This document shows, one piece after another, positions 1 through 60,210 of a stretch of DNA of 64,000 nucleotides. The DNA is from Basidiobolus meristosporus CBS 931.73 (taxonomy: Eukaryota > Fungi > Basidiobolomycota). The stretch is from NCBI GenBank assembly GCA_002104905.1, contig MCFE01000203.1, positions 66,708-130,707 on the forward strand, written 5' to 3'. The translations under genes were made by a program, and so were the position numbers. The first letter of the stretch is position 1. Every line of letters begins with the position of its first letter. The notes below the pieces were generated by a model, which searched no databases, was not told the DNA's origin, and saw nothing but the letters and a program-made list of their open reading frames with translations.

Positions 1-73
1 CAAAACCAGCACAGTACAACTTGCAGCACTGGCAATTGCTAATTCTAGCTGTGGGCACTTTAGGCTACCCAAC

Positions 74-505
74 TCAGCAGCAGTCATCATAGCAATCATC
101 CCAGCATGGGTCACAGCAATCATCATAGCAAGGATCATAGCAGGGATCACAGCAAGGGTCACAGCAAGGATCACAGCATGGGTCACAGCAAGGATCACAG
201 CATGGGTCACAGCAGGGATCACAGCAGGGATCACAGCAGTCATCATAGCAAGGATCATAGCAAGGATCACAGCAGGGATCCCAGCAATCATCATAACAAG
301 GATCATAGCAGGGATCCCAGCAATCATCATAACAAGGATCATAACAGGGGTCACAGCAATCATCATAGTCATAGGATGAGTAGCCTCTCTTCTGAACTTT
401 ACTGGTACCTGCAGCAGCCTGACCATGGGGAAGGGAGAGTGTGGTTCCAAGGAAAAGGACACCAAGAACAGTGGCCAGTGAGAGATTGCTGAAAGAGAAC
501 TTCAT
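74..505 (-). CDS. Small secreted Cys/Asp-rich tetrapeptide-repeat protein (143 aa), unknown family
   Basis: ATG at 505 (MKFSFSNLSLATVLGVLFLGTTLS, hydrophobic signal-peptide-like), KR dibasic site, then 24 repeats of D-[P/D]-C-[C/Y/W] running to the stop at 74-76. Confidence 0.75.
   Translation of the reverse strand: MKFSFSNLSLATVLGVLFLGTTLSLPHGQAAAGTSKVQKRGYSSYDYDDCCDPCYDPCYDDCWDPCYDPCYDDCWDPCCDPCYDPCYDDCCDPCCDPCCDPCCDPCCDPCCDPCCDPCCDPCYDPCYDDCCDPCWDDCYDDCC
77..364. repeat. 12-bp coding tandem repeat, 24 units
   Basis: Units such as ggatcacagcag / ggatcatagcaa / tcatcatagcaa on the + strand; they encode the tetrapeptide array on the - strand. Confidence 0.95.
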
Positions 506-699
506 TTTAGCTAAAAGAAAGAGATGAGTTTTTATGGGAAGACCACTAATAAGTTGAGGCAAGATTGGATGATGCTATACCAGTGCTGACCATTTGGACT
601 TAAATACATTTTCTCCTTGCCAGTCATCCCCACTAATAGTGCCTCCAATATATTTCCATGACACTGAGATCACTATAGTCCCATCAGTAAATCAGGCCC

Positions 700-1044
700 T
701 GTTGTAAAAATTCGTATTTTCCACCTAAATATTCACCTAACTTAGTCACTTAGATCATCATCTTCAAATCCTAGAGAATACTGACCAAATTCCTTGTCGG
801 GATTTACTTAGAATATTTTCACAAATACCAGGTACCCAGAACATGAAAATTCTCAAGTTGTCCAAACAGCCCAAACTTTGCACACATGTTCTTGGGACCT
901 TCCTTAACCTATTCTACGTGTTGTAATGCCAAGACCATGTAAAAGTATAAATACTACTTTTACATTCAATAAATCATGAAGTGAAAACCACATAATCTAC
1001 TTGTTCTCCCAATCACTTCCAATATCTCCAAGACTCTTACAACA
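700..1044 (+). mobile_element. Solo LTR of a Ty1/Copia family
   Basis: TGTTGTAA...TTACAACA termini; closely matches the reverse complement of the LTR at 57041-57389; flanked by GGCCC/GGCCA (4 of 5 match, likely TSD). Confidence 0.9.
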
Positions 1045-1064
1045 GGCCAACCCTAACCCTAAAT

Positions 1065-2150
1065 TGGTATGATATTGAAGAGTATCTGTTACCCTAAGTA
1101 CTTCTCATGGGCTCCATCAGCATTCATATGCATATGTGACAATACAAATGCAAGGACTGGATGAAATGGATATGTGGTTATTCAAGTGGCCTTCTGAAGC
1201 CATTTCTACTAAGAGTACATTGGAAGCATTGGGAGTTATATGTGGATATTAAAGCAGTATTTATCTGGAAGTGGATCACCAATGCCAACTTGGTACATTT
1301 ATAGCTTTTGTGCAAAGGGTTTGTGACAGGACTTGAGCAGCTATACTAAAAACATCAAGCTGAACATGTGGTCCTCTGCTGCTACTGTATCCATTTGCTA
1401 CTCCATCTTGCTTAGTGTGTTGGGAATATTGGGCCTTGCTTCTCCTTTTGGGAGTTTCCTATGGAGCAGATGTGTGGGGAGATAGGAAGACAAGTCAAGT
1501 TGTAGGTACTACCATATCCAATCTTATCAAAAATATTACCTTCATGTCTGTCATAGATGTGATGAGTTGGTGCATGGGAGACAGCCAGGAAGAGTTGGAA
1601 AATACTGAGGACAGATGTGCTCATGGAAACACCTATGCCTATGGCGTTAAGAAGCTATGCAGCCCCAATGTGTGGGTAATTGGTTAACTAATGCAAAGTT
1701 GGGTTGGGTGCAACAAGCAACCAATTTGGATTTGGAAAGCTCTATCACGGTATGCTGGATTTTTCTTGGTCACAAGCCAATTTCTACACCATTCAATACA
1801 GAATTCACACAAACAAGAGCCAAAGCGCACCCATAAGGGGGACTAGAATCCAGCAGGGCAAAGGAATATATTGGCTAAGTACCAAAAAGTTCTTTGCAGA
1901 TATTCAGGAGGTATACGTGGCAAAAGTGGTGGCAATAAAACATATGTTGGCAAGACATATATGTTACCAGCAATACAAGGTATATGGCAACTCTGCAAGT
2001 ATCACACTAAAAAGCCATAAAGATGAGGTGATAGAAGTGTGTCAATTGCAGCAGGTATGCACATTTGTAGAGGCTAGTAAGCAGGAGGCCATAGTGTGTT
2101 TTGATTTGAACTATATGTGGAATACCCAAGGTAGTAGTGGGTAAGCAAAT
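1065..2150 (+). pseudogene. Degenerate CACTA (CMC-EnSpm) transposase fragment
   Basis: Manual translation through stops gives YKCKDWMKWICGYSSGLLKPFLLRVHWKHWELYV...IHLLLHLA*CVGNIGPCFSFWEFPMEQMCGEIG, matching the HxLLHL...GP...W.FPME..CG motif of CACTA transposases; several stops; CpG-poor. Confidence 0.7.
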
Positions 2151-4289
2151 AAAGAGGGTGAATCTATTGTGGAATATATGAATTGCACAAGGGGAGGTAG
2201 AAAAAGGAAATACCATTTAGTAAATTGATATGATTGCATTATACAGAACTAGCTGTAGGCTACCATACTGTTGAGATAATGTCATTTGAGGCTTGCAATG
2301 AGGCCATCAAATCACCATCAGGTTTTTTGCAATATAGGGCAATTGGATGCACTGGCCTGTTAGATCCACTCAAATAGTTGTAGAGCACTCTAAGACTGCA
2401 ACAATGTCATGCCACCCTTGGCAAAATACTGTACAAACACTGTTATATTTTTAACTTTATTTGGCTGTAAAATTAGCCAAATGCTGTTATGATACCATCA
2501 TCAGATTGTGTAGATAGTGATTAATTCCAAGCTGCTGATATTATTACAGTTTCCTGATGGGATCTTGACGGCTGATCCAGATTGGATCCACCCATGGGAC
2601 CAAATTAGTTTTCATAGGACAATAACAAAGTATGACTAGTACTCTTACATTCAGTGAATCATTAAGTGAAAGCCACATGATGTACTTACTGTCCTAATTA
2701 CATGCATTGTGTCCAAAACTCTTATAATAGTAAATAGTAGCCCTTTATTAGCAATAACTTTGGATGCATGACATAATAGTTAATAGCTATTTTAAGGCTT
2801 TCTTGAATGCAGCTAGCAGCAACATGTAGAATTGGTGTATATTTGTGACCATGCTCTTCTAAATAGAAAGTTGTTGTGTTGCACATAGTACAGTAGTATC
2901 TTATAAGCAACCATACTGATAACAGGCTAAATATACAAATATGTTTGGAGCAAACCAATAGATTTTAAGCATGTATTGTTGCAATAATTTGATTTTAATT
3001 TTCAACTTCAATTTACATAAAGGGCAATAACTAAATATTACTAAAGACTCAGCTAGGAAAGTTGAAATCATGCTATTGGATTTGCTATGTTCTTTAGTCA
3101 GCTTGGACACCTCTCTGGAGTTAGTTACACATAAATCCATACATAATTTGGTAGTATTAAACCATGTTTGCTCAATGCTAATGGTATGGCTAACTCTGAT
3201 TAGCAACCCAATATAATGTAATTCAAGTATTTAAAACTAGTGCTTGGCTTCATTCTATTTTCAATACTTTTATTTCTGAACTGGCCATATTTTCAACGCA
3301 GGAATGATTTTGCAGAACCAAATTATTTTGATGCATATAATCGCGAACTCTAGGTTGGCACTGAACTACTCTTAATTATAGGAAACATTTAGCGATCAGA
3401 TGCAAAAAGTCGCGCTAAAACAAACAGCAGAGTTACCTTTTATCCACTAAATCCAGTGCTTATGGGATCCAAAATATCTAAGAGTGCGCACTAATCTAAG
3501 GATTGCATTAATTGGTTTTCTTGAATTTCTATCGGATTATCAGAAAGTTATAGGGGGATAATCACGGAAGATTATTTATGGAAGTCTACTTGTAGCTATT
3601 GTGATTGGACGGAAATAACAAGAGGCGAATGATGATAATGGTGGTGGTACCTTGGCTGAGAAATTCGCATTTTTCTTGTATGTCACTCTTCTTACCAGTA
3701 AACGCAGCAATTTTCCTGTTGTCACTGCTCCAGTAGCTCGATATGCATGGAGCACGAATGAGGGGAATGGGCCCTATTCAATAAGGCGTTACTGTGAACG
3801 TTGGCTATACGAAACCAGAATAATCCCTCAGGATCCAAAGGTAGAGACTATAGGCCAACTTATTTTGAATACTACCCTTCCTTTATTCGAACATTCAAGT
3901 AACTTAGTCAAACTTTGGGTGCACACATTCTGGTTCATTGGGCAATACTGTATGGGGTTGAGTTGGCTAGGATACTTTTGTCTGTGATCGATTATGATCT
4001 TCACCAAAGGTTGATTTCGACTAGCTGGCTGGTAATTACCCAGGGCCACGCCTATATACGAGTTGTTGGCTAATTTCTCGACATGATCACGACTTTCACA
4101 AATAGGTTACATTGAGACTGCCTTTTGATGATACTAACCTCCAAATCAAGCTAGATCCTGAATACGGAGGGACTTGATGAGATACCATCCACAACGAAAA
4201 ATTAGATGGCATGATATGCAGGCTCTGCTATATCAAAGGTTCAGTATAAAAGTCGTCAACTGGCGCTCACCTCGATATCCGCGCTCGAC

Positions 4290-5923
4290 ATGGTGAAAGC
4301 ACACAGTTTACTGGCCTTTTTCGCTACTGCAGCCATCCTTGGCCTCTCCGATGCCAAAGGAAGCAAGCCTAACTTCCTCGTTTTCCTGATGGATGACCAG
4401 GATTTGAAGATGGACTCTCTAACGCTACATGCCACGCGTACACAAATACATTACCACTCAGGGAACTTCATTCAATCATCACTACATCTCCACCGCCATC
4501 TGTTGTCCTTCGAGAGTCTCATTCTGGACCGGGCAATTCCCGCATAACCACAACGTAACCGACGAGTCACCACCGCACGGAGGCTATCCGAAGTTTTTGT
4601 CGAGACAGTTGGACAGTAACTACCTTCCGTTGTGGTTGGACCAGGCTGGCTACTCCAACTACTATCTTGGAAAATTCATCAACGGGGTTGACGCCAGAAA
4701 CCCTGGGCCTCCGAAAGGCTGGACCCACTTCGAGCCGCTTGTGGCACCATGGATTTATCAATATTTAAACCCGACATTCTCCCTCAACGGTGCTCCTTTT
4801 GAGGCGCACGATGGCGAGTATCAGACCGATGTTATCCTCAACAAAACCTTGAACATCCTAGATACCCTAGCTTCGTCTGACAAACCATTCCTGTTCACAG
4901 TCTCTCCTGTGGCCCCGCATGATACTGTGACGGTGAACACCAACTCAGGTGCCGCCGAGTTCTATCCTCCGGTGCCCGCCAAGCGCCATGAGGCGTTGTT
5001 CAAAGATCTGAAGGTCCCCCGGAAACCCAACTTCAATCCCAAGCATCAGGACAAACCCTCTTGGTTGAAAACCCTGCCTTACCTGAACCAAACCCGGCTC
5101 GATGACCTTGACGAACACTATCGACTACGCATTAGATCCCTTCAGGCCGTCGATGAGTTGGTGGAGAAGGTGATCAAGAAACTTGAGAAGCAAGGGCAAC
5201 TTGATAACACCTACATCATCTACACCACTGACAATGGATACCATCTTGGACATCATCGCTTAGGCGCTGGTAAAGGAACTCCGTATGAGGAGGATGTGAA
5301 CATTCCCTTCATTATTCGCGGACCAGGGGTTGCCAAAGGAGAGATTAGTAAGGCATTCACCACACATACCCACGTTGCGGCGACTATTTTGGACCTTGCC
5401 GGACTACCTGTTCCTGCACATCTGGATGCCTCGCCCATGCCAGTGCTGAGGAGACCACACACGAAGTACGATGTCACCGAAGCGTTCAACGTGGAGTTCT
5501 GGTCCAATACCTTTTTCGAGGACACTTGGGAACGCTTCTCCAACAACTCTTACAAAGCGGTTAGAGTCATCGGAGACGGCTACAACTACTATTACTCCAC
5601 CTGGTGTACTGGCGAACATGAATTAGTATGATCTGCAAGAGGACCCCTACCAACTTCACAACATCTATCCTCGCGTAGTGCACAAGGATGCTAGACTACT
5701 TGACCGTCTCAACGCTCTTTTGAATGTACTTAGAGACTGCCAAGGAGACACCTGTCGCCATCCTTGGGGAGTACTCCATCCTGATGGCTCAGTTAGAAAT
5801 CTCAAGCAGGCACTCAGAAGTCGGCATGATTCGTACTACGCCGGATTGCCGGTATGGAAATTCATCACCTGCAAGGTGTTCAATGATCGTACCAACGAAG
5901 TATTGGTCAAGAAAGGCCATTAG
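4290..5923 (+). CDS. Secreted sulfatase (arylsulfatase / GlcNAc-6-sulfatase-like), intronless, with two apparent +1 frameshifts (~4425 and ~5626)
   Basis: Signal peptide, KPNFLVFLMDDQD, formylglycine motif CCPSR, YLGKFIN, TTDNGYHLGHH, KGTPYEEDVNIPF; removing one base at each site joins ORFs 4290, 4429 and 5678 into one protein (…GEHELYDLQEDPYQLHN…). Confidence 0.85.
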
Positions 5924-7422
5924 AAGTCGAACTCGCCGGAAACTAAATGCATGTCCCAATAAATTATCAAACCATTAGCTGCAATGGACCACTTGAAGAT
6001 TGATATTGAAACCGAATGATCACGGCCTCCAGCGCAAGCTACAAAGCATGTTCACTACAACTGGGCATTCCTCTACAAACGAAGTCTTATCGGACAGCCA
6101 TCCACCTAGGAACTGCCCTTTTTTGACAAGAAAACCACCGCTTACATAATGACCTGATTTAGGATATCGCGAACACTAATTGTTGATGGGTTCCATGGAG
6201 CATTATCATAATTCTCCGCACTGGAGATATCTTGGTGTATTTGATGGATTTAATTGATAAATAAATAAACGAATATTGTCTAACCATATTACTAAGCTAT
6301 CAACGCCAGTCTGTATAGCAATGTCCGACCTCCCCCGGAGATCACTAATAGAAATGCATTAAAAATCGGGCTAAAAGAATCCCCTGAATTATCAAGGGCA
6401 TTTGGACAACATCCAGACTTTTAAACGTTTCCACAGTTATGAAGAATTGCCTAATATGTTACCAAGACCAATCGACATCTGACAACTGAATTCGTTGGGA
6501 GTATGCAGTCCTGATTAGTTGCACACACGCATACCGTAGTCTTGGTTCGGGAAGAGTACATCCACTGGGAAATGTGCTAATGCCCCCAACACTAAGCCAT
6601 GAATGCGCCATGAGCATTCCTCGACACCGTGTCTGGCCTCTCCTTCCGACATTTTTATGACAATCACCATGTGGCAGAGACTCGTATATGATTCCCAATA
6701 ATAGAAGAGGGAAATGGAGTTTCCTTTTTTGCCAAATCCAGCCAAAGGCGTGCACTGGGCTGGTCGACCAAGACAAGGATTTATGCAATGTCGTGTTGGG
6801 AAGGTTGTTTGGTTAACTAGGCCCAACTTGACCAGACCTGCACACAATTCATCCGGTCAAATGAATTATGTAACATCACATGACATATGACTACATGAAG
6901 CATTAGTGTGATAATGCACCCTACATGCTTGGCTTGTGACTAACCTCAGAATATATAATAATGACAAGAGTGCTACGAAATCTCGAGCACCGAAGACCCA
7001 ACATCTCATTGGTGGGGGAAGAATGATTCAATGGAATCAGTCACTCGAGAAGTATGGCTAAACCTTTCCACTGATTTCTTACGCAATCGAATCACCAGGT
7101 GCGTCATCGATCCACACCCACATATAGATTACCTGGCCATTCAAATATCTTACCAAATCTTTCGAAGTCACTCGTCCACGATCGAACCAATTTTCTTTGG
7201 ATTTGGGTTCGACCTTGTGACTGGTTGTGTCGATTCACCGACTCATTTACCCATCCCTTCCCTCGCCCAGTTGTATATGCTCAACGAAATTTCATGCTCC
7301 CCGTCACGTGGCTGGCGGTGGACTTTTTTTTCGAATGGATCCTGCTCTTTTACGGATTTCCTCGACGCCGTCACTTGCTATCGTACCATATATTTCCACA
7401 ACCCGCACGCACACAAACCCAA

Positions 7423-11120: not shown

Positions 11121-12593
11121 ATGAAGTCCTCGACCGCCTTCCTTGCTCTGGCCTCCTCTATCCTGGCTGTGAACGCTTGCGATTCCGAGTGGCTCCAACG
11201 TAAGATCACCCTCCAGGGGCTTCTAAGACACACCAACAACTTCCAGAAGTTCGCCAATGCTCACAACCACACCCGCGTGTTCGGCAGTGAAGGCCATCAG
11301 AAGACCGTCGACTACATCCATGGGATTGTCAAGAACGCGGGATACGATGTAACCATCCAGGAGTTCACTGCTCCTTATTCCGAAACATTGGCACAGAAGC
11401 TTTCCGTGAACGGCAAGGAGTACGATATCCAGGCAATGACCCTGACTGCCTCCACACCTGAAGGCGGATTGACCGCTCCACTTGTTCTTGTCCCCGATGT
11501 CGCCGGTGAGAAGGGCTCGGCTGGATGTGAAGATGGAGACTTCGCTGGTCTTGATCTCAAAGGGAAGATTGCCTTGGTCGAAAGAGGCTCCTGCGCATTC
11601 AACAACAAATCCTTGAATGCCGGTAAGCTTGGCGCCGTTGCTACCATTGTGTACAACAACGCAGCTGGTGACCTGAAGGGAACCCTCGGTGCTGAGGATA
11701 CTTCCAAGATCCCCACCGGTGGCATCAGTCAGGAATCCGGAAAGGCGTTGATCGAGCTGCTGAAGAAGGGTGAAGTCAAGGCAGCCTTGAATTTGGTGGA
11801 ACTCAATGAGGTTCGTTCCACCTACAACGTGATTGCTGAGACTAAGGGTGGAGATGCATCCAAGGTCGTCATGCTTGGCGCTCACTCCGACTCTGTCCAA
11901 GCTGGCCCTGGAATCAACGACAACGGGTCAGGAAGCGCAGCCCTTCTCGAACTAGCCTACCAGTTCCGCAACGTCAAGCCTAAGAACAAGGTTCGTTTCG
12001 CATGGTGGTCAGCCGAGGAGTTCGGACTCCTTGGATCGGAGTACTACGTCAGCAAATTGCAAAAGACCGACATTGCCAACATCGCGGTGATGCTCAACTT
12101 CGACATGATTGCCTCGCCAAACTACGTGATCCGTATTTACAACGGCGATGAGAGCGGCCAACCTGTGCCAGCTGGCTCTGAAGTTGTCACCAAATTGTTC
12201 GAGGATCACTTCAAGGCTAAGAAAATCACCTATCTCAGTGAGCCAGCTCCCTTTGACCGTACCGATATTGGACCTTTCTCCGCTGTAGGCATTCCATCTG
12301 GAGGCTTGGAAACTGGCGCCGAGAAGCTGAAGACTGAGGAAGAAGCCAAACTGTTTGGTGGTAAGGCTGGCGAGCCATATGACAAGTGCTATCACCTTGC
12401 TTGTGATACCACTGCCAACCTTGCCCACAAAGCATTCTTGATCAATGGCCGCGGTATCGCTCACGCAGTGGCAACCTACTCCCAAGATGTCTCCACCGTA
12501 GCAGCCGCTCGTGGTGGCCCAGCCAAGAAGACCAAAAGAGGAGTGGCCCCAATCAGCCATGGATCAGGAGGCTGCACCTTACCAAAAGCATAA
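11121..12593 (+). CDS. Secreted M28 PA-domain aminopeptidase (aminopeptidase Y / Lap2-like), copy 1
   Basis: Signal peptide, PA domain (KGKIALVERGSC), Zn-ligand motifs GAHSD, NDNGSG, AEEFG, NFDM, YH; intronless 490 aa. Confidence 0.92.
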   Translation: MKSSTAFLALASSILAVNACDSEWLQRKITLQGLLRHTNNFQKFANAHNHTRVFGSEGHQKTVDYIHGIVKNAGYDVTIQEFTAPYSETLAQKLSVNGKEYDIQAMTLTASTPEGGLTAPLVLVPDVAGEKGSAGCEDGDFAGLDLKGKIALVERGSCAFNNKSLNAGKLGAVATIVYNNAAGDLKGTLGAEDTSKIPTGGISQESGKALIELLKKGEVKAALNLVELNEVRSTYNVIAETKGGDASKVVMLGAHSDSVQAGPGINDNGSGSAALLELAYQFRNVKPKNKVRFAWWSAEEFGLLGSEYYVSKLQKTDIANIAVMLNFDMIASPNYVIRIYNGDESGQPVPAGSEVVTKLFEDHFKAKKITYLSEPAPFDRTDIGPFSAVGIPSGGLETGAEKLKTEEEAKLFGGKAGEPYDKCYHLACDTTANLAHKAFLINGRGIAHAVATYSQDVSTVAAARGGPAKKTKRGVAPISHGSGGCTLPKA

Positions 12594-13840: not shown

Positions 13841-15313
13841 ATGAAGTCCTCGACCGCCTTCTTTGCTCTGGCCTCCTCTATCCTGGCTGTGAACGCTTGC
13901 GATTCCGAGTGGCTCCAACGTAAGATCACCCTCCAGGGGCTTCTGAGACACACCAACAACTTCCAGAAGTTCGCCAATGCCCACAACCACACCCGCGTGT
14001 TCGGCAGTGAAGGCCATCAGAAGACCGTCGACTACATCCATGGGATTGTCAAGAACGCGGGATACGATGTAACCATCCAGGAGTTCACTGCTCCTTATTC
14101 CGAAACATTGGCACAGAAGCTTTCCGTGAACGGAAAGGAGTACGATATCCAGGCAATGACCCTGACTGCCTCCACACCTGAAGGCGGATTGACCGCTCCA
14201 CTTGTTCTTGTCCCCGATGTCGCCGGTGAGAAGGGCTCGGCTGGATGTGAAGATGGAGACTTCGCTGGACTTGATCTCAAAGGGAAGATTGCCTTGGTCG
14301 AAAGAGGCTCCTGCGCATTCAACAACAAATCCTTGAATGCCGGTAAGCTTGGCGCTGTTGCTACCATTGTGTACAACAACGCAGCTGGTGACCTGAAGGG
14401 AACCCTCGGTGCTGAGGATACTTCCAAGATCCCCACCGGTGGCATCAGTCAGGAATCCGGAAAGGCGTTGATCGAGCTGCTGAAGAAGGGTGAAGTCAAG
14501 GTAGCTTTGAATTTGGTGGAGTTCAGAGAGAATCGTTCCACCTACAACGTGATTGCCGAGACTAAGGGTGGAGATGCATCCAAGGTCGTCATGCTTGGCG
14601 CTCACTCCGACTCTGTCCAAGCTGGCCCTGGAATCAACGACAACGGGTCAGGAAGCGCAGCCCTTCTCGAACTAGCCTACCAGTTCCGCAACGTCAAGCC
14701 TAAGAACAAGGTTCGTTTCGCATGGTGGTCAGCCGAGGAGTTCGGACTCCTTGGATCGGAGTACTACGTCAGCAAATTGCAAAAGACCGGCATTGCCAAC
14801 ATCGCGGTGATGCTCAACTTCGATATGGTTGCTTCTCCAAACTACGTAATCCGTGTATATAACGGTGATGAAAGTGGACAGCCTGTGCCAGCTGGTTCCG
14901 AAGTCGTCACCAAATTGTTCGAGGATCACTTCAAGGCCAAGAAGATTTCATATGTGAGCGGTGTATTTCCCTTCAGTCGCTCAGATGTTGGACCTTTCGC
15001 AGCAGCTGGCATCCCATCGGGAGGTTTGGATACTGGCGCCGAGAAGCTGAAGACTGAGGAAGAAGCCAAACTGTTTGGTGGTAAGGCTGGCGAGCCATAT
15101 GACAAGTGCTATCACCTTGCTTGTGATACCACTGCCAACCTTGCCCACAAAGCATTCTTGATCAATGGCCGCGGTATCGCTCACGCAGTGGCAACCTACT
15201 CCCAAGATGTCTCCACCGTAGCAGCCGCTCGTGGTGGCCCAGCCAAGAAGACCAAGAGAGATGTAGCACCAGTTCATAATGGATCGGGTGGATGCTCCCT
15301 CCCCAAAGTGTAA
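13841..15313 (+). CDS. Secreted M28 PA-domain aminopeptidase, copy 2
   Basis: Tandem paralog of 11121-12593 with the same motifs; 490 aa; TATAAATA at 13780. Confidence 0.92.
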   Translation: MKSSTAFFALASSILAVNACDSEWLQRKITLQGLLRHTNNFQKFANAHNHTRVFGSEGHQKTVDYIHGIVKNAGYDVTIQEFTAPYSETLAQKLSVNGKEYDIQAMTLTASTPEGGLTAPLVLVPDVAGEKGSAGCEDGDFAGLDLKGKIALVERGSCAFNNKSLNAGKLGAVATIVYNNAAGDLKGTLGAEDTSKIPTGGISQESGKALIELLKKGEVKVALNLVEFRENRSTYNVIAETKGGDASKVVMLGAHSDSVQAGPGINDNGSGSAALLELAYQFRNVKPKNKVRFAWWSAEEFGLLGSEYYVSKLQKTGIANIAVMLNFDMVASPNYVIRVYNGDESGQPVPAGSEVVTKLFEDHFKAKKISYVSGVFPFSRSDVGPFAAAGIPSGGLDTGAEKLKTEEEAKLFGGKAGEPYDKCYHLACDTTANLAHKAFLINGRGIAHAVATYSQDVSTVAAARGGPAKKTKRDVAPVHNGSGGCSLPKV

Positions 15314-25826: not shown

Positions 25827-25963
25827 CAGAGTGGATACATCGGTTAATTTGGATTCAGGTCCTGTAATTTCATGAGTTGTAAAATAAATAGCACCCAGTT
25901 GCTACTCCCGAATCATCAACCACTCATTTGCAAGTGTGCAAGCAAGCATCAACATTCCTTTCA

Positions 25964-26683
25964 ATGTCCGCTCAGTCAACTACCAAGATATCCATCATCC
26001 TCTACACCGTCTATGGCCACATCTATGAGCTGGCCAAGGCTATCAAGAAAGGTCTGGAAACGAATAACGGAGTGGTAGCCACCATCTACCAAGTGCCAGA
26101 GACACTCTCTGATGACATCCTCGCCAAGATCCATGCCCCGCCTAAGCCCGATATCCCAGTGATCACTCCTGACATGCTCACCGAGGCTGATGGCTTCTTC
26201 TTTGGCATCCCCACCAGATTTGGGGCCATGCCAGCTCAGTTCCAGCAGTTCTGGGATGCCACGGGCGCACTCTGGGCCCAAGGAGCACTCCGCAACAAGT
26301 TCGCAGCCACCTTCTTCTCCACTGGCTCACAACATGGAGGACAGGAGACAACAGCAATGACATTCATGACCACTGTTGTCCACCATGGAATGATCTACAT
26401 CCCCAATGGATTCGCATCACCACACTTGACTGACAACTCTGAGATAGTTGGCGGAGGACCATGGGGAGCAGGAACCATCACGAATGGAGATGGATCACGA
26501 ATGCCATCTCAGAAAGAGCTGGAAGTGGCCGAGCTACAGGGACAAAACTACGGAGAGATTGTGGTGCGTCATACTCAACCTCAGTTGGTGGAGAGAGTCG
26601 TCGAGAAGATCGTGGAGAAGCAGGTGCCATCTAAGGCAAATGCGGTGACCAAAAAGTCATTCTTCAAAAAACTCTTTGCCTAA
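25964..26683 (+). CDS. Flavodoxin-like NAD(P)H:quinone oxidoreductase (WrbA/Pst2/Obr1 family), copy 1
   Basis: YTVYGH FMN loop, GIPTRFG, STGSQHGGQET, GGPWGAGT; 239 aa. Confidence 0.93.
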   Translation: MSAQSTTKISIILYTVYGHIYELAKAIKKGLETNNGVVATIYQVPETLSDDILAKIHAPPKPDIPVITPDMLTEADGFFFGIPTRFGAMPAQFQQFWDATGALWAQGALRNKFAATFFSTGSQHGGQETTAMTFMTTVVHHGMIYIPNGFASPHLTDNSEIVGGGPWGAGTITNGDGSRMPSQKELEVAELQGQNYGEIVVRHTQPQLVERVVEKIVEKQVPSKANAVTKKSFFKKLFA

Positions 26684-27382
26684 TACGTGAACCCTACTAC
26701 GCATTTATGTAACCTTTCACCCGATTGCCATCCAGCTTGATTTCCGTCATATTACCTCAGTGATGAATTGGACGTGTACACTGATAACCTTACCTATGTT
26801 TACTATTGAGCTTCCGATTCTCCTATACTAATTCGGGAGGTTGCTGCTGAGCTGCGCGTACCAAGAAATGTAGTATATAATAAACCTAGTAACCATCGCA
26901 CTGCTATTGAATTGCCGTGTTAACTATGTTCCATGGATTTGGGGCCAAATGGCGTAAACTCAAACCAACAACAATTACCAACTGTGAATATGTAGCATAA
27001 CTGACAGAAACATTGATCCCCACCTTTAACCTACCTCTTTCGGCAACTTACCTATCCCTGACGGAATGACTTTACTTTTCATAACAGTATGGTGGCCATG
27101 GTAGTGAACTGGGGCTCAAAACTGCATTTTGCACCCATCCTCCTGCGTGGATTGCAAGCAGTCGCCTTCCATATCGTTGCCACCACATTGGATACATACT
27201 CTTGACCCACCGTGTATACATAGTTGTTCAGATTCTGAGGAATTCTTAGGGCCTCAACAGACTAGTTTGGATTTGGAACACTTGATCTAGAATAACTGTG
27301 GCGTCTGAACAAACCATCACCAAAATCATTGAAACAAGTGTGCCATACAGAGAAGATATGATTAATATGGCCGGAGGGGTGC

Positions 27383-27389
27383 TTACTAA
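27383..27389 (+). promoter_or_regulatory. Yap1/Pap1-type response element TTA(C/G)TAA upstream of flavodoxin copies (27383, 30439, 32066, 35256)
   Basis: Exact matches to the AP-1-like YRE consensus. Confidence 0.45.
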
Positions 27390-27583
27390 CCCCTGATGGT
27401 AAGTAATCTATTTGAAAGTACAAACGGAGATATTACCATATATGGCTCATTTACCCAAGATCGATGGATTCCACCATTAGAAATTGATGCGTGAGATGGC
27501 AAAATAAATAGCACCCAGTTGCTACTCCCGAATCATCAACCACTCATTTGCAAGTGTGCAAGCAAGCATCAACATTCCTTTCA

Positions 27584-28304
27584 ATGTCCGCTCAGTCAAC
27601 TACCAAGATATCCATCATCCTCTACACCGTCTATGGCCACATCTATGAGCTGGCCAAGGCTATCAAGAAAGGTCTGGAAACGAATAACGGGGTGGTAGCC
27701 ACCATCTACCAAGTGCCAGAGACACTCTCTGATGACATCCTCGCCAAGATCCATGCCCCGCCTAAGCCCGATATCCCAGTGATCACTCCTGACATGCTCA
27801 CTGAGGCTGATGGCTTCTTCTTTGGCATCCCCACCAGATTTGGGGCCATGCCAGCTCAGTTCCAGCAGTTCTGGGATGTCCACAGGCGCACTCTGGGCCC
27901 AAGGAGCACTCCGCAACAAGTTCGCAGCCACCTTCTTCTCCACTGGCTCACAACATGGAGGACAGGAGACAACAGCAATGACATTCATGACCACTGTTGT
28001 CCACCATGGAATGATCTACATCCCCAATGGATTCGCATCACCACACTTGACTGACAACTCTGAGATAGTTGGCGGAGGACCATGGGGAGCAGGAACCATC
28101 ACGAATGGAGATGGATCACGAATGCCATCTCAGAAAGAGCTGGAAGTGGCCGAGCTACAAGGACAAAACTATGGGGAGATTGTGGTGCGTCACACTCAAC
28201 CTCAGATAGTGGAGAGAATTGTGGAAAAGATCATTGAGAAGGAAGTACCAGATAGAGCCAAGGTGAGCAGAAAAAACTCGTTCTTCAAGAAAATCTTTGC
28301 CTGA
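27584..28304 (+). CDS. Flavodoxin-like quinone reductase copy 2, with apparent +1 frameshift at 27879
   Basis: Near-identical to copy 1; gatgTccac versus gatgccac in the other copies. Confidence 0.8.
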
Positions 28305-28494
28305 AACTGTACTTATGGTCATGAAGAGCTAACTTAAACCTTGTATTGTACTGACAGTAATATTTTCTAACCCCACTATTTTTTGTTCCAACTGTATAAT
28401 TTTATGCCATGCAATAAACATAGAAAATTAAACGGAACTCTGTGCTAAAGTTCTCTTATGGCTCACAAATTCCTCAAGTATTATGAGCTACCAA

Positions 28495-28512
28495 TATATA
28501 TATATATATATA
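28495..28512. repeat. (TA)9 microsatellite
   Basis: Direct sequence. Confidence 0.9.
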
Positions 28513-29155
28513 TCAGCTGCCTGGCTGCCTGAATGAAGTGTTACGAAGGGAAAGCTTCAAAGCTAGGTCCTCTTGCGTCGTATTTAAACATATGAATTCA
28601 TAAATCTATAGTAAGCGTGCTCCACTACAAGAAACGTCGGGGAACCTGTCCTTAAGCGGCTAATGATGGAGTTTTGTGCGACTATCTACACCTGTATTTC
28701 TCAAATTTAATGTAGCGGTTAGCGGAGGCATCCACCTTGATGATCGCTGTTGTCAAACATGTGGGTGGTTTATTATAGCCGTGAAAACATCTAGGGAAGC
28801 ACCGTAATTGTCATTAATTTATTGCTAAGCAACAATCCACAATCTGTAGTGATAAATTGGAATAGTAGTGGAAAAATTCAGAGGCCAAGTATTTGTAACT
28901 TCAACAAAATCAATAGCCCCTCATTACGGAGCAACGGCACACAAATATTAGTGACGAACTGAGATGGTTGTGGATGAATAGCCATATATGGGTTATTTAC
29001 CCATCACGGATACATCGGTTAATTTGGATTCAGGTCCTGAGGAAGGTTGACCATTTCGTAATAAATACCACTTGCAGGCTCTACGCTGTGTCATACAATC
29101 ACTCAAATTGATAGTTCAGCACCTACATTCGACTATTCCATATCTTTACTACGCA

Positions 29156-29875
29156 ATGACAGTACAATCCAAGACTAAGGTTTTCATCATCCTCTACACC
29201 GTCTATGGCCACATCTATGAGCTGGCCAAGGCTATCAAGAAAGGTCTGGAAACGAATAACGGAGTGGTAGCCACCATCTACCAAGTGCCAGAGACACTCT
29301 CTGATGACATCCTCGCCAAGATCCATGCCCCGCCTAAGCCCGATATCCCAGTGATCACTCCTGACATGCTCACCGAGGCTGATGGCTTTTTCTTTGGCAT
29401 CCCCACCAGATTCGGGGCCATGCCAGCTCAGTTCCAGCAGTTCTGGGATGCCACAGGCGCACTCTGGGCCCAAGGAGCACTCCGCAACAAGTTCGCAGCC
29501 ACCTTCTTCTCCACTGGCTCACAACATGGAGGACAGGAGACAACAGCAATGACATTCATGACCACCATCGTCCACCATGGAATGATCTACATCCCCAATG
29601 GATTCGCATCACCACACTTGACTGACAACTCTGAGATAGTTGGCGGAGGACCATGGGGAGCAGGAACCATCACGAATGGAGATGGATCACGAATGCCATC
29701 TCAGAAAGAGCTGGAAGTGGCCGAGCTACAAGGACAAAACTACGGAGAGATTGTGGTGCGTCATACTCAACCTCAGTTGGTGGAGAGAGTCATCGAGAAG
29801 ATCGTGGAGAAGCAGGTACCATCTAAGACCAATACAGCGGTCAAGAAGTCATTCTTCAAAAAACTTTTTGCCTGA
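29156..29875 (+). CDS. Flavodoxin-like quinone reductase copy 3
   Basis: ATG at 29156 (MTVQSKTKVFIILY), intact ORF, same motifs. Confidence 0.93.
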   Translation: MTVQSKTKVFIILYTVYGHIYELAKAIKKGLETNNGVVATIYQVPETLSDDILAKIHAPPKPDIPVITPDMLTEADGFFFGIPTRFGAMPAQFQQFWDATGALWAQGALRNKFAATFFSTGSQHGGQETTAMTFMTTIVHHGMIYIPNGFASPHLTDNSEIVGGGPWGAGTITNGDGSRMPSQKELEVAELQGQNYGEIVVRHTQPQLVERVIEKIVEKQVPSKTNTAVKKSFFKKLFA

Positions 29876-30647
29876 CATATGAATCAGACAATACAATTGT
29901 GTAACCTTTCAATCAACGGCTCCTGGCCAAAATCAAGTCTTAATTACATCAGTATTCAACCGGTCTTGAATACTGATAACCTTACCAGTCTTTATTATCT
30001 AATATTGAATCTTCGGACTCAGAATCAGGATGTTGAGACTAAATTAAAAGCAACAAGCAGTATAGAATATAATAAATATAATGGCGATTATAATAACCAC
30101 GTTAAAAGAGTTATATTAAGGTTGTTGGGCCAGACGAGGTAGGCTCGGAATAGCAACGACTATAACTTAACCGTAACTCCAAACTTTATTGTAAGTTAGC
30201 TCTTTGCATGCATGTCATTCGGTGTGAGTTGCTCATAGTCGCTTGTAGATTTTAGACTGGCTGTTGACTAGCTCTATCTGGAAAGCTACTAGAGATTCGG
30301 AGTATTCCCTCAAAGAACTCATCAATCTAGGTTGGGCGCTTGATTAATGATAGACAGAGATACTGTCTTCAAATAACTAAAACTGATATGTACACATAGA
30401 TTTGAATTTAGATGCGGTTAATATGTTTGCAAGGATGCTTACTAACCTCTGATGGTAAGTAATCTATTTGAAAGTACAAACGGAGATATTACCATATATG
30501 GCTTATTTACCCAAGATCGATGGATTCCACCATTAGAAATTGATGCGTGAGATGGCAAAATAAATAGCACCCAGTTGCTACTCTCGAATCATCAACCACT
30601 CATTTGCAAGTGTGCAAACAAGTAAGCAAGCATCAACACTCCTTTCA

Positions 30648-31367
30648 ATGTCCGCTCAGCCAACTACCAAGATATCCATCATCCTCTACACCGTCTATGG
30701 CCACATCTATGAGCTGGCCAAGGCTATCAAGAAAGGTCTGGAAACGAATAACGGAGTGGTAGCCACCATCTACCAAGTGCCAGAGACACTCTCTGATGAC
30801 ATCCTCGCCAAGATCCATGCCCCGCCTAAGCCCGATATCCCGGTGATCACTCCTGACATGCTCACTGAGGCTGATGGCTTTTTCTTTGGCATCCCCACCA
30901 GATTTGGGGCCATGTCAGCTCAGTTCCAGCAGTTCTGGGATGCCACAGGCGCACTCTGGGCCCAAGGAGCACTCCGCAACAAGTTCGCAGCCACCTTCTT
31001 CTCCACTGGCTCACAACATGGAGGACAGGAGACAACAGCAATGACATTCATGACCACTGTTGTCCACCATGGAATGATCTACATCCCCAATGGATTCGCA
31101 TCACCACACTTGACTGACAACTCTGAGATAGTTGGCGGAGGACCATGGGGAGTAGGAACCATCACGAATGGAGATGGATCACGAATGCCATCTCAGAAAG
31201 AGCTGGAAGTGGCCGAGCTACAGGGACAAAACTACGGAGAGATTGTGGTGCGTCATACTCAACCTCAGTTGGTGGAGAGAGTCATCGAGAAGATCGTGGA
31301 GAAGCAGGTGCCATCTAAGGCAAATGCGGTGACCAAAAAGTCATTCTTCAAAAAACTCTTTGCCTAA
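30648..31367 (+). CDS. Flavodoxin-like quinone reductase copy 4
   Basis: Intact ORF; C-terminal tail and 3' flank match copy 1. Confidence 0.93.
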   Translation: MSAQPTTKISIILYTVYGHIYELAKAIKKGLETNNGVVATIYQVPETLSDDILAKIHAPPKPDIPVITPDMLTEADGFFFGIPTRFGAMSAQFQQFWDATGALWAQGALRNKFAATFFSTGSQHGGQETTAMTFMTTVVHHGMIYIPNGFASPHLTDNSEIVGGGPWGVGTITNGDGSRMPSQKELEVAELQGQNYGEIVVRHTQPQLVERVIEKIVEKQVPSKANAVTKKSFFKKLFA

Positions 31368-32274
31368 TACGTGAACCCTACGACGCATTTATGTAACCTT
31401 TCACCCGATTGCCATCCAGCTTGATTTCCGTCATATTACCTCAGTGATGAATTGGACGTGTACACTGATAACCTTACCTATGTTTACTATTGAGCTTCCG
31501 ATTCTCCTATACTAATTCGGGAGGTTGCTGCTGAGCTGCGCGTACCAAGAAATGTAGTATATAATAAACCTAGTAACCATCGCACTGCTATTGAATTGCC
31601 GTGTTAACTGTGTTCCATGGATTTGGGGCCAAATGGCGTAAACTCAAACCAACAACAATTACCAACTGTGAATACGCAGCACAACTGACACAAATATTGA
31701 TCCCCACCTTTAATCTACCTCTTTCGGCAACTTACCTATCCCTGACGGAATGACTTTACTTTCATAACAGTATGGTGGCCATGGTAGTGAACTGGGGCTC
31801 AAAACTGCATTTTGCACCCATCCTCCTGCGTGGATTGCAAGCAGTCGCTTTCCATATCGTTGCCACCACATTGGATACATACTCTTGACCCACCGTGTAT
31901 ACATAGTTGTTCAGATTCTGAGGAATTCTTAGGGCCTCAACAGACTAGTTTGGATTTGGAACACTTGATCTAGAATAACTGTGGCGTCTGAACAAACCAT
32001 CACCAAAATCATTGAAACAAGTGTGCCATAGAGAGAAGATATGATTAATATGGCCGGAGGGGTGCTTACTAACCCCTGATGGTAAGTAATCTATTTGAAA
32101 GTACAAACGGAGATATTACCATATATGGCTTATTTACCCAAAATCGATGGATTCCACCATTAGAAATTGGTCCGTGAGATGGCAAAATAAATAGCACCCA
32201 GTTGCTACTCCCGAATCATCAACCACTCATTTGCAAGTGTGCAAACAAGTAAGCAAGCATCAACACTCCTTTCA

Positions 32275-32994
32275 ATGTCCGCTCAGTCAACTACCAAGAT
32301 ATCCATCATCCTCTACACCGTCTATGGCCACATCTACGAGCTGGCCAAGGCTATCAAGAAAGGTCTGGAAACGAATAACGGGGTGGTAGCCACCATCTAC
32401 CAAGTGCCAGAGACACTCTCTGATGACATCCTCGCCAAGATCCATGCCCCGCCTAAGCCCGATATCCCAGTGATCACTCCTGACATGCTCACTGAGGCTG
32501 ATGGCTTTTTCTTTGGCATCCCCACCAGATTTGGGGCCATGCCAGCTCAGTTCCAGCAGTTCTGGGATGCCACAGGCGCACTCTGGGCCAAAGGAGCACT
32601 CCGCAACAAGTTCGCAGCCACCTTCTTCTCCACTGGCTCACAACATGGAGGACAGGAGACAACAGCAATGACATTCATGACCACTGTTGTCCACCATGGA
32701 ATGATCTACATCCCCAATGGATTCGCATCACCACACTTGACTGACAACTCTGAGATAGTTGGCGGAGGACCATGGGGAGCAGGAACCATCACGAATGGAG
32801 ATGGATCACGAATGCCATCTCAGAAAGAGCTGGAAGTGGCCGAGCTACAAGGACAAAACTATGGGGAAATTGTGGTGCGTCTTACGCAGCCCCAAGTAGT
32901 GGAGAGGGTAGTGGAGAAGATCGTGGAAAAGCAAATCAAGGAAAAGGTAAAGTTCGTTGAGAAGAAATCATTCCTGAAGAAAATATTCTCCTAG
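32275..32994 (+). CDS. Flavodoxin-like quinone reductase copy 5
   Basis: Intact ORF, distinct C-terminus KQIKEKVKFVEKKSFLKKIFS. Confidence 0.93.
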   Translation: MSAQSTTKISIILYTVYGHIYELAKAIKKGLETNNGVVATIYQVPETLSDDILAKIHAPPKPDIPVITPDMLTEADGFFFGIPTRFGAMPAQFQQFWDATGALWAKGALRNKFAATFFSTGSQHGGQETTAMTFMTTVVHHGMIYIPNGFASPHLTDNSEIVGGGPWGAGTITNGDGSRMPSQKELEVAELQGQNYGEIVVRLTQPQVVERVVEKIVEKQIKEKVKFVEKKSFLKKIFS

Positions 32995-33738
32995 CCTTGT
33001 CGAATATACATTTGTGTAAAGCCGTTGCATTCATATTGGCGATATTGGGAAACTGAATTTGTATGCCATTATGCTCGAACTTGTAAGAATAGTAATAATT
33101 AATAAAACTTATATGATACTTTGCCCGCGTAAGTCAATTCGAATGCGGGTTCTTTATATCGGAACTTAACGGAGCCTTGAATCGGCCAAGGAACTTTTTA
33201 ATGGAAACTTGGATGATCACAGGTGTTAAAAGTAAGCATAAAGCTTGAATCCTATTTCCATTCTTAGATCACGACTCAACTACATACCTTCGGCTAAAGA
33301 GTAGATCGCTTGGGAGTTTAACAGTATATAGATATATACGGTAGTTCTGCCGGTAACCCCAGATTAGAATGCATTGCAACACGAGCATCCCATGAAGCGT
33401 GAAAGATAAGATTCAATGGCGGAGCTTTGTCAAACATCTTGCATCAAGGTTATCCGGAAAAATAACCTAGCTTAGGATGATTATGCATAAAATCATTACG
33501 AAGTATGCTACTAACTTCTCGGTTGATGCACACATTCGACTGCGTGCGACAAGGGGAAGTGTTATATCGGGCCAATTTAACCAGATCTATAGCTATGCTT
33601 TGGAAATCCGGAGATACAACTTGTCGTTATATGTACTTTATCCATCGCCATTGCTAAATAGGTATGCACCCTCAGAAAAGAAAATATCGATTTTATATGT
33701 ATCATGAGCACACAATCAAAATCAAATGTATGATCACA

Positions 33739-34080
33739 GGCCCAAGGAGCACTCCGTGACAAGTTCGCAGCCACCTTCTTCTCCACTGGCTCACAACACG
33801 GAGGACAGGAGACAACAGCGATGACATTCATGACCACCGTTGTCCACCATGGAATGATCTACATCCCCAATGGATTCGCATCACCACACTTGACTGACAA
33901 CTCTGAGATAGTTGGCGGAGGACCATGGGGAGCAGGAACCATCACGAATGGAGATGGATCGCGAATGCCATCTCAGAAAGAGCTAGACGCGGCCGAGCTA
34001 CAAGGTCAATACTATGGGGAGGTTGCGGTGCGTCACATTCAACCTGAGATTGTGAAGTGAGTGGTCGAGAAATAAAATAG
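33739..34080 (+). pseudogene. Flavodoxin-like fragment (3' half only), unit 6
   Basis: Begins at ggcccaaggagcactcc; no 5' half; premature stop in the tail. Confidence 0.85.
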
Positions 34081-34629
34081 AAGTACCAGCCGAAAATCAG
34101 TCCAGAAGAAACTCTTTGCATAAGGCGCTACTCCTGATCTTCACCGGTCGATAAAAGACCATTTATCAAGGAAGATGGCATTAAAGAAAGCGCCTAATAT
34201 GGCCGAATTGTCGGGCGGAAAGTCATTTCTTAAGGTAACTCGAAACCATGTGCGCTGATAACCTTGTTGACACCTTGGCGGTGACCAATTTGAATAGATC
34301 ACATACACAAGCATCTACTGATGAACTCGACCGGTCCTATTTCAAATTTTCTTCCATTATTTGGGATGGATCCCGCAATCAACGCGCTTGGGCGCCTCAC
34401 ATGCTTTACATGAAAACTACATACATCCAGTATCGAATTTCATGTTGGGATATTTAAGGAACACATGTGATTATGAGCGGTGAAAATACCATAACTATCC
34501 GTACTTGTATCAGTTCATGTAGAACTTCACCCCTGGTCGGATGTAATCAATGAGGAACTCCCCCGTATTTGGTCAGTTTATCTATCTAGATTAGATGAAT
34601 TCAAGTAACCATATTGGTAGATATGTTAG

Positions 34630-34850
34630 CCCTACAACAGCAATGGCATTCATGACCACCATCGTCCACCATGGAATGATCTACATCCCCAATGGATTCG
34701 CATCACCACACTTGACTGACAACTCTGAGATAGTTGACGGAGGACCATGGGGAGCAGGAACCATCGCGATCAGAAAGAGATACAAGGTCAAGACTACGGG
34801 TAAATTGTAGTCCGTCATATTCAACCCCAGATGGTGGAGGAAGCAAATAT
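34630..34850 (+). pseudogene. Flavodoxin-like fragment, unit 7
   Basis: TTAMAFMTTIVHHGMIYIPNGFASPHL... followed by a deletion and frameshift. Confidence 0.8.
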
Positions 34851-35414
34851 GGGAAGAGTGGACCTTCTGAAGTCATCCCTCTAAAATCAACACACACCAT
34901 CATTGTCAACTAAGGATTATCCTTGAACACCAGTAAAGCCTTCATACTTACTAATCCATGTTGGACCTCGGAAAAAATCTAAAAATGGACACATCTGATT
35001 ATTTTTGTGATGAGCAACCCCATCATTCATATGATATCGGAAAGCCACTTCGCACAATTCTTTTCAGTATGGATACTTGCGTTAGGCAGAGAATTCTCTT
35101 TCTAGGTGTGATACTCTTTCTATATCGATCTAGTAGACGGTCTATGAGTCAACACTGAATATCAAGCGTGAATGCCAATTTGTAATGATATCCAAATGCG
35201 GGATATTTATCCAGCGAAATCTCGCCGAAGAGTATTTGCAATCCTTTTCGGTTGATTAGTAACGAATCTAGGATGATCCTTAACACTTGGAAATGAAATA
35301 AATACCGCTTCATAGCACCTACCTCCTACATCGAATTTTGATTGCTGCATCTTTTGCTTTATACCTTTCCCTTTGCAAATACATTAACGTCCTCCTAGTG
35401 TGACTTATTGCGTA

Positions 35415-36134
35415 ATGGCCGTCGAACCAAAGACCAAGATTTACATCATCCTTTACACCGTCTATGGCCATATCTACGAAGTGGCCAAGGCTGTCAAGAA
35501 AGGAATTGAGAAAAATGAACGAGTAGAAGTCACCATCTACCAAGTGCCAGAGACACTCTCTGATGACATCCTCGCCAAGATCCATGCCCCACCTAAGCCC
35601 GATATTCCAGTGATCACTCCTGACATGCTCACCGAGGCTGATGGCTTCTTCTTTGGCATCCCCACCAGATTTGGGGCCATGCCAGCTCAGTTCCAGCAGT
35701 TCTGGGATGCCACGGGCGCACTCTGGGCCAAAGGAGCACTCCGCAACAAGTTCGCAGCCACCTTCTTCTCCACCGCCTCACAACATGGAGGACAGGAGAC
35801 AACAGCAATGACATTCATGACCACCGTTGTCCACCATGGAATGATCTACATCCCCAATGGATTCGCATCACCACACTTGACTGACAACTCTGAGATAGTT
35901 GGTGGAGGACCATGGGGAGCTGGTACTATTGCCAACGGTGATGGATCCAGAATGCCATCTCAGAAAGAGCTGGAAGTGGCCGAGCTACAAGGACAAAACT
36001 ACGGAGAGATTGTGGTGCGTCATACTCAACCTCAGATTGTGGAGAAAACCGTGGAGAAGGTGGTAGTGAAAGAGGTGCCGGCTCAGGCTGAAGTAACAAA
36101 GAAGAAATCGTTCTTGAAGAAAATCTTCAACTAA
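35415..36134 (+). CDS. Flavodoxin-like quinone reductase copy 8 (most divergent intact copy)
   Basis: MAVEPKTKIYIILY...KKSFLKKIFN, intact. Confidence 0.93.
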   Translation: MAVEPKTKIYIILYTVYGHIYEVAKAVKKGIEKNERVEVTIYQVPETLSDDILAKIHAPPKPDIPVITPDMLTEADGFFFGIPTRFGAMPAQFQQFWDATGALWAKGALRNKFAATFFSTASQHGGQETTAMTFMTTVVHHGMIYIPNGFASPHLTDNSEIVGGGPWGAGTIANGDGSRMPSQKELEVAELQGQNYGEIVVRHTQPQIVEKTVEKVVVKEVPAQAEVTKKKSFLKKIFN

Positions 36135-55995: not shown

Positions 55996-56788
55996 TCCTA
56001 TACTGACCGGGGTGATATAATTGATGGTAGTTGCAAGCAATGGAAACAGCAGCAGGCACTTATTAAATAGGAGAAAATCGAGATCGATGTTACTGTTGCT
56101 CAAACATATAATTATCTTCCGGAACGTTACCAGTAGGGGAGGTCGATGATAGCGATGTTAAGCACACTGGTCTCAACTTGGTGGATTTAGTTGTGCCGAT
56201 GTGTATTGAATCCTCGATTATAATACTCGTCTTAAGAAATAGCTGCCGATTGCTGTTTTAGATTCTCATTCTATTGGTGCATTGCCGAATCATTTCAACT
56301 CGCGTATGTCGCATTCTTCCATATAGCGATGGCTTGGTGTTATGAATTAGTGTATCCAGTATTGTTTTGCTTGACGAACATCTGATCCATATTAGGTAAT
56401 CAGCAGAGTTGTAGCTTTACCATAGTAAATGTACAGAGCGCTTGCAATCATGGATCAAGGAGTTCTCAGTATCCTGATGGTCCTGAATGATATCGCTGAT
56501 AAGTAGCGCATGGGGATTGGTGATTTGTCGTGTAGGACATCATGCCTTTGGTGGATTGATCGTCCATTTCAGATCACATCGGGTACAGCTGATTTTGTCA
56601 AGTAGATCATCAATATTGGCTAATTGATTCAAGTGAGCACAGCCGTCTAGCACAGCCGTCTAGCACAACCCTCCAATTTCGCCATCACTGCGCATTACTG
56701 AATATGTCAGCATATTGCCTTAGGACTTGAAAGCGTTTTGGAAGTTGGAACTCTTGGGGCTCTCATAATGATTTCAATAGATTGTATA

Positions 56789-60088: not shown

Positions 60089-60210
60089 TATTTTGGCTCA
60101 AATTTTGACTGATTTCCGGTCAGTTTTTTGGCAAATGCTGTACACCTAAATATTCTTAGATGTTCCGCACTTGGTCTGTATCCATACCATGCTTCAAATG
60201 GAGTAGAATC

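Follow-up and report, generated by a model that had tools for sequence, protein, structure and literature searches.

A putative secreted protein of 24 D-[P/D]-C-[C/Y/W] tetrapeptides encoded in CpG-depleted DNA of Basidiobolus meristosporus

Main finding

An open reading frame near the left-hand edge of a 64,000-nucleotide stretch of Basidiobolus meristosporus CBS 931.73 DNA (hereafter the window) is probably a real protein-coding gene. Its predicted product, here called the D-P-C-C protein, has a signal-peptide-like N-terminus, a short pro-region ending in KR, and a repeat array in which 96 residues divide without remainder into 24 D-[P/D]-C-[C/Y/W] tetrapeptides. Secreted Cys-rich tandem-repeat proteins are a known kind; this one has an extreme composition, and no homologues were found in the searches described below. 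If expressed, it would be among the most extreme natural gene-encoded Cys/Asp polymers, with a repeat period of 4, and would add a new protein of material or metal-binding type from a fungal lineage that has received little study. Members of the Basidiobolus lineage live in vertebrate guts and occasionally infect people.

Location and features of the gene

The window, whose origin is fungal and not human, comprises the last 64 kb of contig MCFE01000203.1 (assembly GCA_002104905.1), and positions in the record are obtained by adding 66707 to the window positions used here. The D-P-C-C frame was identified from the ORF list and the translation of the window as a single open frame of 143 codons, running from 505 down to 74 on the minus strand. 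An earlier note on this DNA had given the span as 74-505 and had counted 24 tetrapeptides with 36 Cys, 31 Asp, and no Lys or Arg; on translation the coordinates and counts were exact, and the strand is minus. The features of the gene and its surroundings are collected in Table 1. The same array was delimited by TRF at 86-359, with a period of 12 and 22.8 copies.

Table 1. Features of the D-P-C-C gene and of the DNA around it (window coordinates).
Feature	Position	Strand	Basis
Complete single-exon CDS, 143 codons and TGA stop	74..505 (stop 74-76; start ATG 503-505)	minus	ORF list, translation
Signal-peptide-like N-terminus, residues 1 to about 26; n-region MKFSFSN, h-region LSLATVLGVLFLGTTLSL	428..505	minus	Hydropathy scan
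Small-residue c-region PHGQAAAG following the h-region, to about residue 33		minus	Hydropathy scan
Short pro-region ending in K39-R40 (386-391), the sole dibasic site and candidate Kex2 cleavage site	386..427	minus	Translation
GYSSYDY, predicted N-terminus of the mature chain	365..385	minus	Translation
24 units of 12 nt encoding D-[P/D]-C-[C/Y/W]; consensus unit GATCCTTGCTGT	77..364	minus	TRF, translation, unit comparison
TATA-like TATTTAA, 101 nt 5' of the ATG	600..606	minus	Motif match only
CCAAT, 63 nt 5' of the ATG	564..568	minus	Motif match only
CpG-depleted, lower-GC domain enclosing the gene	1..4000	none	CpG obs/exp scan

The start codon lies in the context AAAATGA, with an A at -3, and this residue, the TATA-like motif, and the CCAAT box form gene-like surroundings that lend weak, motif-level support to the gene. 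No poly(A) signal was visible in the 73 nt between the stop codon and the window edge.

Coding status of the repeat array

The array is open in four of the six frames, and openness by itself is therefore no proof of a gene. Among the 24 units there are 14 distinct 12-mers, and all 14 encode D-[P/D]-C-[C/Y/W]. Positions 1, 2, 7, 8, and 10 of the 12-nt unit are invariant, and variation is confined to four wobble positions, a coupled exchange between CC and GA (Pro/Asp), and an exchange between G and A (Cys/Tyr). The minimum spanning tree of the distinct units contains 15 substitutions, of which nine are silent in the D-P-C-C frame, compared with 0, 0, and 2 of the 15 in the other three open frames; that unit changes are mostly silent in this frame alone argues that it is under constraint at the protein level. 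Of all 36 single substitutions that the consensus unit could undergo, only 8 remain within the motif, which makes a run of twelve or more independent changes within the motif very unlikely by chance. When the 46 observed differences were placed randomly by simulation, the motif was kept in 0 of 200,000 trials, a result whose significance is overstated since the units are copied in blocks and do not mutate independently.

Three other origins of the array were considered and rejected. A chance ORF on a 12-nt minisatellite was rejected on the strength of the bias towards silent variation together with the retention of the motif in every distinct unit. The overlapping plus-strand ORF at 106-492, which encodes a His/Ser/Lys/Asp repeat, was discarded as the true gene in that 13 of the 15 changes are non-synonymous in its frame, a signal peptide is lacking, and the ORF is missing from the public record. 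Neutral CpG decay of an Arg-rich repeat was dismissed as the source of the Cys codons, because CAY (His) codons, which are the equally likely outcome on the reverse strand, are absent from the repeat.

Architecture and composition of the predicted protein

The 143 residues are made up of 40 residues up to KVQKR, then GYSSYDY, and then the 96-residue array; in sequence order, the protein reads MKFSFSN, an 18-residue hydrophobic core, PHGQAAAGTSKVQKR, GYSSYDY, and the 24 tetrapeptides. The 11-residue Kyte-Doolittle mean of the N-terminal segment peaks at 2.4 over residues 8-20, and the hydrophobic core spans about residues 8-24. A signal peptide is predicted on the basis of this hydropathy, with a cleavage site estimated at about residue 26-33. 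No dibasic site other than the KR at residues 39-40 is present, and residues 41-143 are devoid of Lys and Arg. Kex2 cleaves after KR. The hydrophobic N-terminal segment and the single KR thus agree with the arrangement described in the earlier note, namely a signal peptide, a pro-region ending in KR, and GYSSYDY.

The tetrapeptides were tallied as 8 DPCY, 8 DPCC, 4 DDCC, 2 DDCW, 1 DPCW, and 1 DDCY, so that the 96-residue array contains 36 Cys, 31 Asp, 17 Pro, 9 Tyr, and 3 Trp, and zero Lys or Arg. The central (DPCC)7 run reported previously was located at units 12-18. The higher-order DDCx-DPCY-DPCY unit that had also been proposed is exact only in units 1-3 and 4-6, and the pattern is loose thereafter.

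The predicted mature chain (residues 41-143) has 103 amino acids, a mass of roughly 11.8 kDa, and a calculated net charge of -32.6 at pH 7. It is 35% Cys (36/103) and 31% Asp (32 Asp), and it also contains 12 Tyr and 3 Trp. The number of Cys residues (36) is even, and their spacings include 12 CC, 11 CxxC, and 30 CxxxC. There are 17 Asp-Pro bonds, which follow the strict four-residue spacing. No N-x-S/T sequon, Ser/Thr-rich stretch, or hydrophobic C-terminus was present in the mature chain; N-glycans and a GPI anchor are therefore not expected, and O-mannosylation is little expected. AlphaFold2 run without an alignment returned an all-helix artefact with a mean pLDDT of 46.6. Because it has zero Lys and Arg, the mature chain would be invisible to trypsin-based proteomics.

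Searches for related sequences

With Pfam at E<=10, the sole match was MSSP (PF03940), at 11.7 bits (E 0.21) and below the cut-off of 21.2, and this weak match can be put down to a common periodic pattern. At the same threshold there was no match to a metallothionein family, and none to keratin-associated proteins or cornifin. The exact 143-residue protein was absent from a collection of 15 billion sequences. A word-indexed protein search gave 7 weak matches, in which the only words in common were CCxPCC or CYDPCY; these included three members of a clostridial CCxPCC family, one soil read-derived fragment, and one nematode hypothetical protein. An exhaustive HMMER search gave 833 matches. The 14 matched stretches examined, taken from the best 150 of the 833, align only to query residues 36-142, that is, to the pro-piece and the repeat, and consist of Cys-poor period-4 repeats (DPTx, EPSx, DPRx) and a few with Cys. 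The Cys-containing HMMER matches included a surface protein of the SpaA/SdrD_B type whose repeats read CYDPCEEPCY; MSSP and cornifin signals, both weak, were also found among the look-alikes.

The PDB search recovered only the NANP/NVDP repeats of the Plasmodium circumsporozoite protein, with a whole-sequence E of 1e-9 and a per-domain i-E of 0.63. No usable match was obtained from the ESM Atlas, two metagenome scans, the first with the protein and the second with a degenerate DNA pattern that represents the signal-peptide codons, gave zero matches, and a look-up of paralogues via the plus-strand frame produced nothing useful. In the full-text literature, nothing relevant was found on the motif or on secreted Cys-rich proteins of Basidiobolus. 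Judged from these alignments, every resemblance found is low-complexity convergence and not homology, and membership of a family cannot be claimed. The suggestion that the protein does not belong to a named fungal family was accordingly upheld by the Pfam, word, HMMER, ESM Atlas, and PDB searches.

The clostridial CCxPCC proteins (P0001, P0004, P0005) have CCDPCC, CCKPCC, and CYDPC runs that match the repeat with 46-55% identity over 29-40% of the query. Unlike the D-P-C-C protein, they are bacterial, with Lys-rich repeats and a globular C-terminal domain, and they have no signal peptide or KR. Their C-terminal domain resembles BclA_C (exosporium) at E 0.006, a score below the cut-off, and they are probably spore-surface proteins. 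One such locus, in an uncultured Clostridium sp. MAG (NZ_CAMQRY010000157.1, L002:29-793), combines an N-terminal CCKPCC/CCDPCC run with a BclA_C-like C-terminus. The family may represent a Cys-rich spore-surface class whose N-terminal part has no Pfam family.

Proposed product

Both functions suggested in the earlier note, an extracellular metal chelator and a Cys/Tyr-cross-linked polymer of the wall or of an adhesive, are plausible. The reading that is tentatively preferred, by analogy and at less than middling confidence, is that the mature chain would be a cross-linkable, polyanionic component of an extracellular matrix, coat, or adhesive. The prepropeptide would enter the ER, where the signal peptide would be removed, and Kex2 would cut after KR and free the 103-residue chain. 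The chain would have no hydrophobic core and no globular fold and would most likely be a string of Asp-Pro turns. The strict period-4 Asx-Pro units of the Plasmodium circumsporozoite protein, whose NPNA units form beta-turns, offer a reasonable model for such D-P-C-x units; that protein has no Cys, comes from another organism, has another role, and is not homologous to the D-P-C-C protein. Thiols, and possibly tyrosines too, would then join the chains by inter-chain cross-links, and the outcome would be an insoluble or gel-like polyanionic material, such as a spore or hyphal coat or a conidial adhesive, which would also bind divalent cations. As the copy described here lies in CpG-poor, repeat-like DNA, it may be methylated and may be expressed at particular stages only or never.

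Several considerations point towards cross-linking. A chain that is one-third Cys, has no hydrophobic core, and passes through the oxidising secretory pathway would be expected to form dense, largely intermolecular disulfides, and its Tyr residues could cure the material by another route. The only look-alikes are surface or structural proteins, an argument by analogy. Mammalian high-sulfur keratin-associated proteins, SPRR/cornifin, and the Drosophila Mst84D/Mst87F 'MSSP' sperm-tail proteins share with the D-P-C-C protein a very high Cys content, CC beside Pro, short strict repeats, and the lack of a globular fold, and it is general knowledge that these classic CCxP proteins act through dense disulfide or other covalent cross-linking. 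They are, however, intracellular and basic or neutral, with a period of 5 or Cys-Gly-Pro repeats, whereas the D-P-C-C protein is secreted, has a period of 4, is 31% Asp, and carries a charge of about -32.

A rather unlikely alternative is that the protein is a secreted thiol/carboxylate metal binder, that is, a gene-encoded extracellular analogue of phytochelatins or metallothioneins that would capture or detoxify Cu, Zn, Cd, or Fe in the gut lumen, an anoxic and reducing place that Basidiobolus inhabits for part of its life. Its composition is what such a function would suggest, since the Cys residues, in CC, CxxC, and CxxxC spacings, alternate with Asp and no basic residue intervenes; this resembles metallothioneins and phytochelatins in Cys content (about 35%), in the CC/CxxC/CxxxC spacings, and in the way carboxylate and thiol groups alternate, as they do in (gamma-Glu-Cys)n. 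Phytochelatins are synthesised enzymatically and not ribosomally. The low mass of metallothioneins and their Cys content of about 30% in CC/CxC/CxxC motifs are matched by the mature chain (11.8 kDa, 36/103 Cys, 12 CC, 11 CxxC), but metallothioneins have few aromatic residues and are cytosolic without a signal peptide, whereas the D-P-C-C protein has 15 aromatic residues and a signal-like segment, no CxC clusters, and no match to a metallothionein family. The oxidising ER would also normally oxidise the thiols, and neither a metal-regulated promoter nor a neighbouring transporter gene turned up within 20 kb; in a reducing gut, on the other hand, secreted thiols could stay free. Basidiobolus invests unusually heavily in metal chemistry outside the cell, in that its siderophore NRPS genes are expanded and siderophore activity has been measured (PMC7466969), which is consistent with a metal-binding role.

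CpG depletion and possible silencing

The CpG observed/expected ratio was 0.08 at window positions 1-2000 and 0.32 at 2001-4000, compared with about 0.8 over the housekeeping genes of the window and 0.00-0.05 over a retrotransposon nest at 58-64 kb. The 432-nt CDS contains no CpG, against 25.7 expected. Codon choice follows the same pattern. Cys at the third residue of the tetrapeptide, where T is the next base, is encoded by TGC in 21 of the 24 units, while Cys or Tyr at the fourth residue, where the G of Asp follows, is always TGT or TAT. Among synonymous codons ending in C or T, C was used in 0 of 36 cases before G and in 51 of 88 cases elsewhere (Fisher 4e-11), and two control genes of the window have C in about 45% of such codons before G.

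Long-term CG methylation with deamination is the simplest reading of the CpG loss at the D-P-C-C gene, as it is on transposons, and the paired CpG-poor domains suggest that CG methylation is aimed at repeats in B. meristosporus. This species encodes CDCA7F, nearly all species with CDCA7/CDCA7F also have DNMT1, and B. meristosporus is not among the listed exceptions (PMC10538959).

The right-hand CpG-depleted domain (58001-64000) coincides with the retrotransposon nest and is separated from the domain at 1-4000 by CpG-normal DNA. It holds a copia-type RVT_2 at 58632-59336 and a LINE-type RVT_1 at 60369-61694, both on the minus strand. A 91-nt tandem repeat with 2 copies of 96% identity is located at 60215-60394, directly 3' of the ORF for the LINE-like reverse transcriptase, which is on the minus strand.

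Repeat DNA that is methylated is as a rule silent in fungi, and from its repeat-like, CpG-depleted setting the D-P-C-C copy may be unexpressed. A stronger version of this, namely that the copy is a silenced or decaying member of an amplified array whose ORF was once functional, or is still so at other copies, and that it is methylated and without product, is considered unlikely. It draws on the CpG ratio of the first 2 kb, the CpG-free CDS, the avoidance of C before G, and the presence of CDCA7F in B. meristosporus, and also on the public annotation: neither the D-P-C-C ORF nor the overlapping plus-strand ORF, both of which were looked up, is in the public protein set, and no gene is called in the adjacent interval 1121-4428. 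What weighs against decay is that the start codon, signal peptide, KR, and stop codon are all intact despite heavy C-to-T pressure, and that the variation among units follows protein-level constraint; an ORF that stays intact and motif-perfect under a pressure that makes stop codons argues for selection. A gene that is free of CpG yet seemingly constrained raises the question of whether amplified arrays are silenced like transposons or are expressed at particular stages. The failure of gene callers to report the D-P-C-C frame here marks a blind spot of routine annotation.

Relation to Kex2-processed repeat proteins and further readings

A broader proposal, regarded as improbable, combines elements of the above: the protein would be a ribosomally made, secreted poly-thiol/poly-carboxylate polymer without counterpart, either an extracellular, phytochelatin-like metal sponge that stays reduced in the anoxic gut or a Cys/Tyr-curing glue or coat for adhesive conidia, in which the 17 Asp-Pro bonds could allow dismantling in the stomach, and the family would have been amplified and then cytosine-methylated.

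The D-P-C-C protein shares with the Kex2-processed repeat proteins (KEPs) of fungi a predicted signal peptide, a Kex2-type KR, and a tandem-repeat body. In KEPs a dibasic site separates each repeat from the next, and many short peptides are produced, whereas the D-P-C-C protein has one KR and no basic residue in the 103 residues that follow, and it is therefore not a KEP. Lineage-specific gene duplication is described for KEPs, and B. meristosporus CBS 931.73 has 43 of them, the most among the fungi surveyed, many of them duplicated (PMC7329392), as would be expected of a genome in which small genes for secreted repeat proteins are readily amplified. That the chain is instead a small-peptide precursor, broken down to P-C-x-D tetrapeptides by enzymes or through its acid-labile Asp-Pro bonds, or else modified in the manner of a RiPP, is very improbable: the number and strict spacing of these bonds and the large KEP catalogue of the strain would favour it, but there is only one dibasic site, Asp-Pro bonds are cleaved by acid only slowly at body temperature, and no DUF3328/UstYa, tyrosinase, or other RiPP-tailoring gene was found in the next 20 kb.

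Other features of the window

The 20 kb next to the D-P-C-C gene contain genes for a sulfatase, a trypsin-PDZ protease, two M28 aminopeptidases, a tetraspanin, and GlyRS. The arylsulfatase gene is located at 4429-6003 on the plus strand, with a spliced product of 470 amino acids in the record; its orthologue from B. ranarum (KAK9708900.1, P0162), encoded on a 12-kb contig, is 88% identical, and a paralogue within B. meristosporus is 84% identical. The two genes for secreted PA-domain M28 aminopeptidases lie in tandem at 11121-12593 and 13841-15313, with 95% protein identity, and unlike the D-P-C-C gene this pair shows no CpG depletion. About eight tandem genes for WrbA/FMN_red-type, flavodoxin-like quinone reductases occupy 25928-36134, with an intermediate CpG depletion (0.49-0.67), and the copy at 27548-28304 consists of two overlapping ORFs and looks frameshifted. 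A hybrid histidine kinase (GAF-HisKA-HATPase_c-REC) is encoded on the minus strand at 54361-56103, and the ORFs beside it at 51194-52332, also on the minus strand, look like a separate response-regulator gene with introns.
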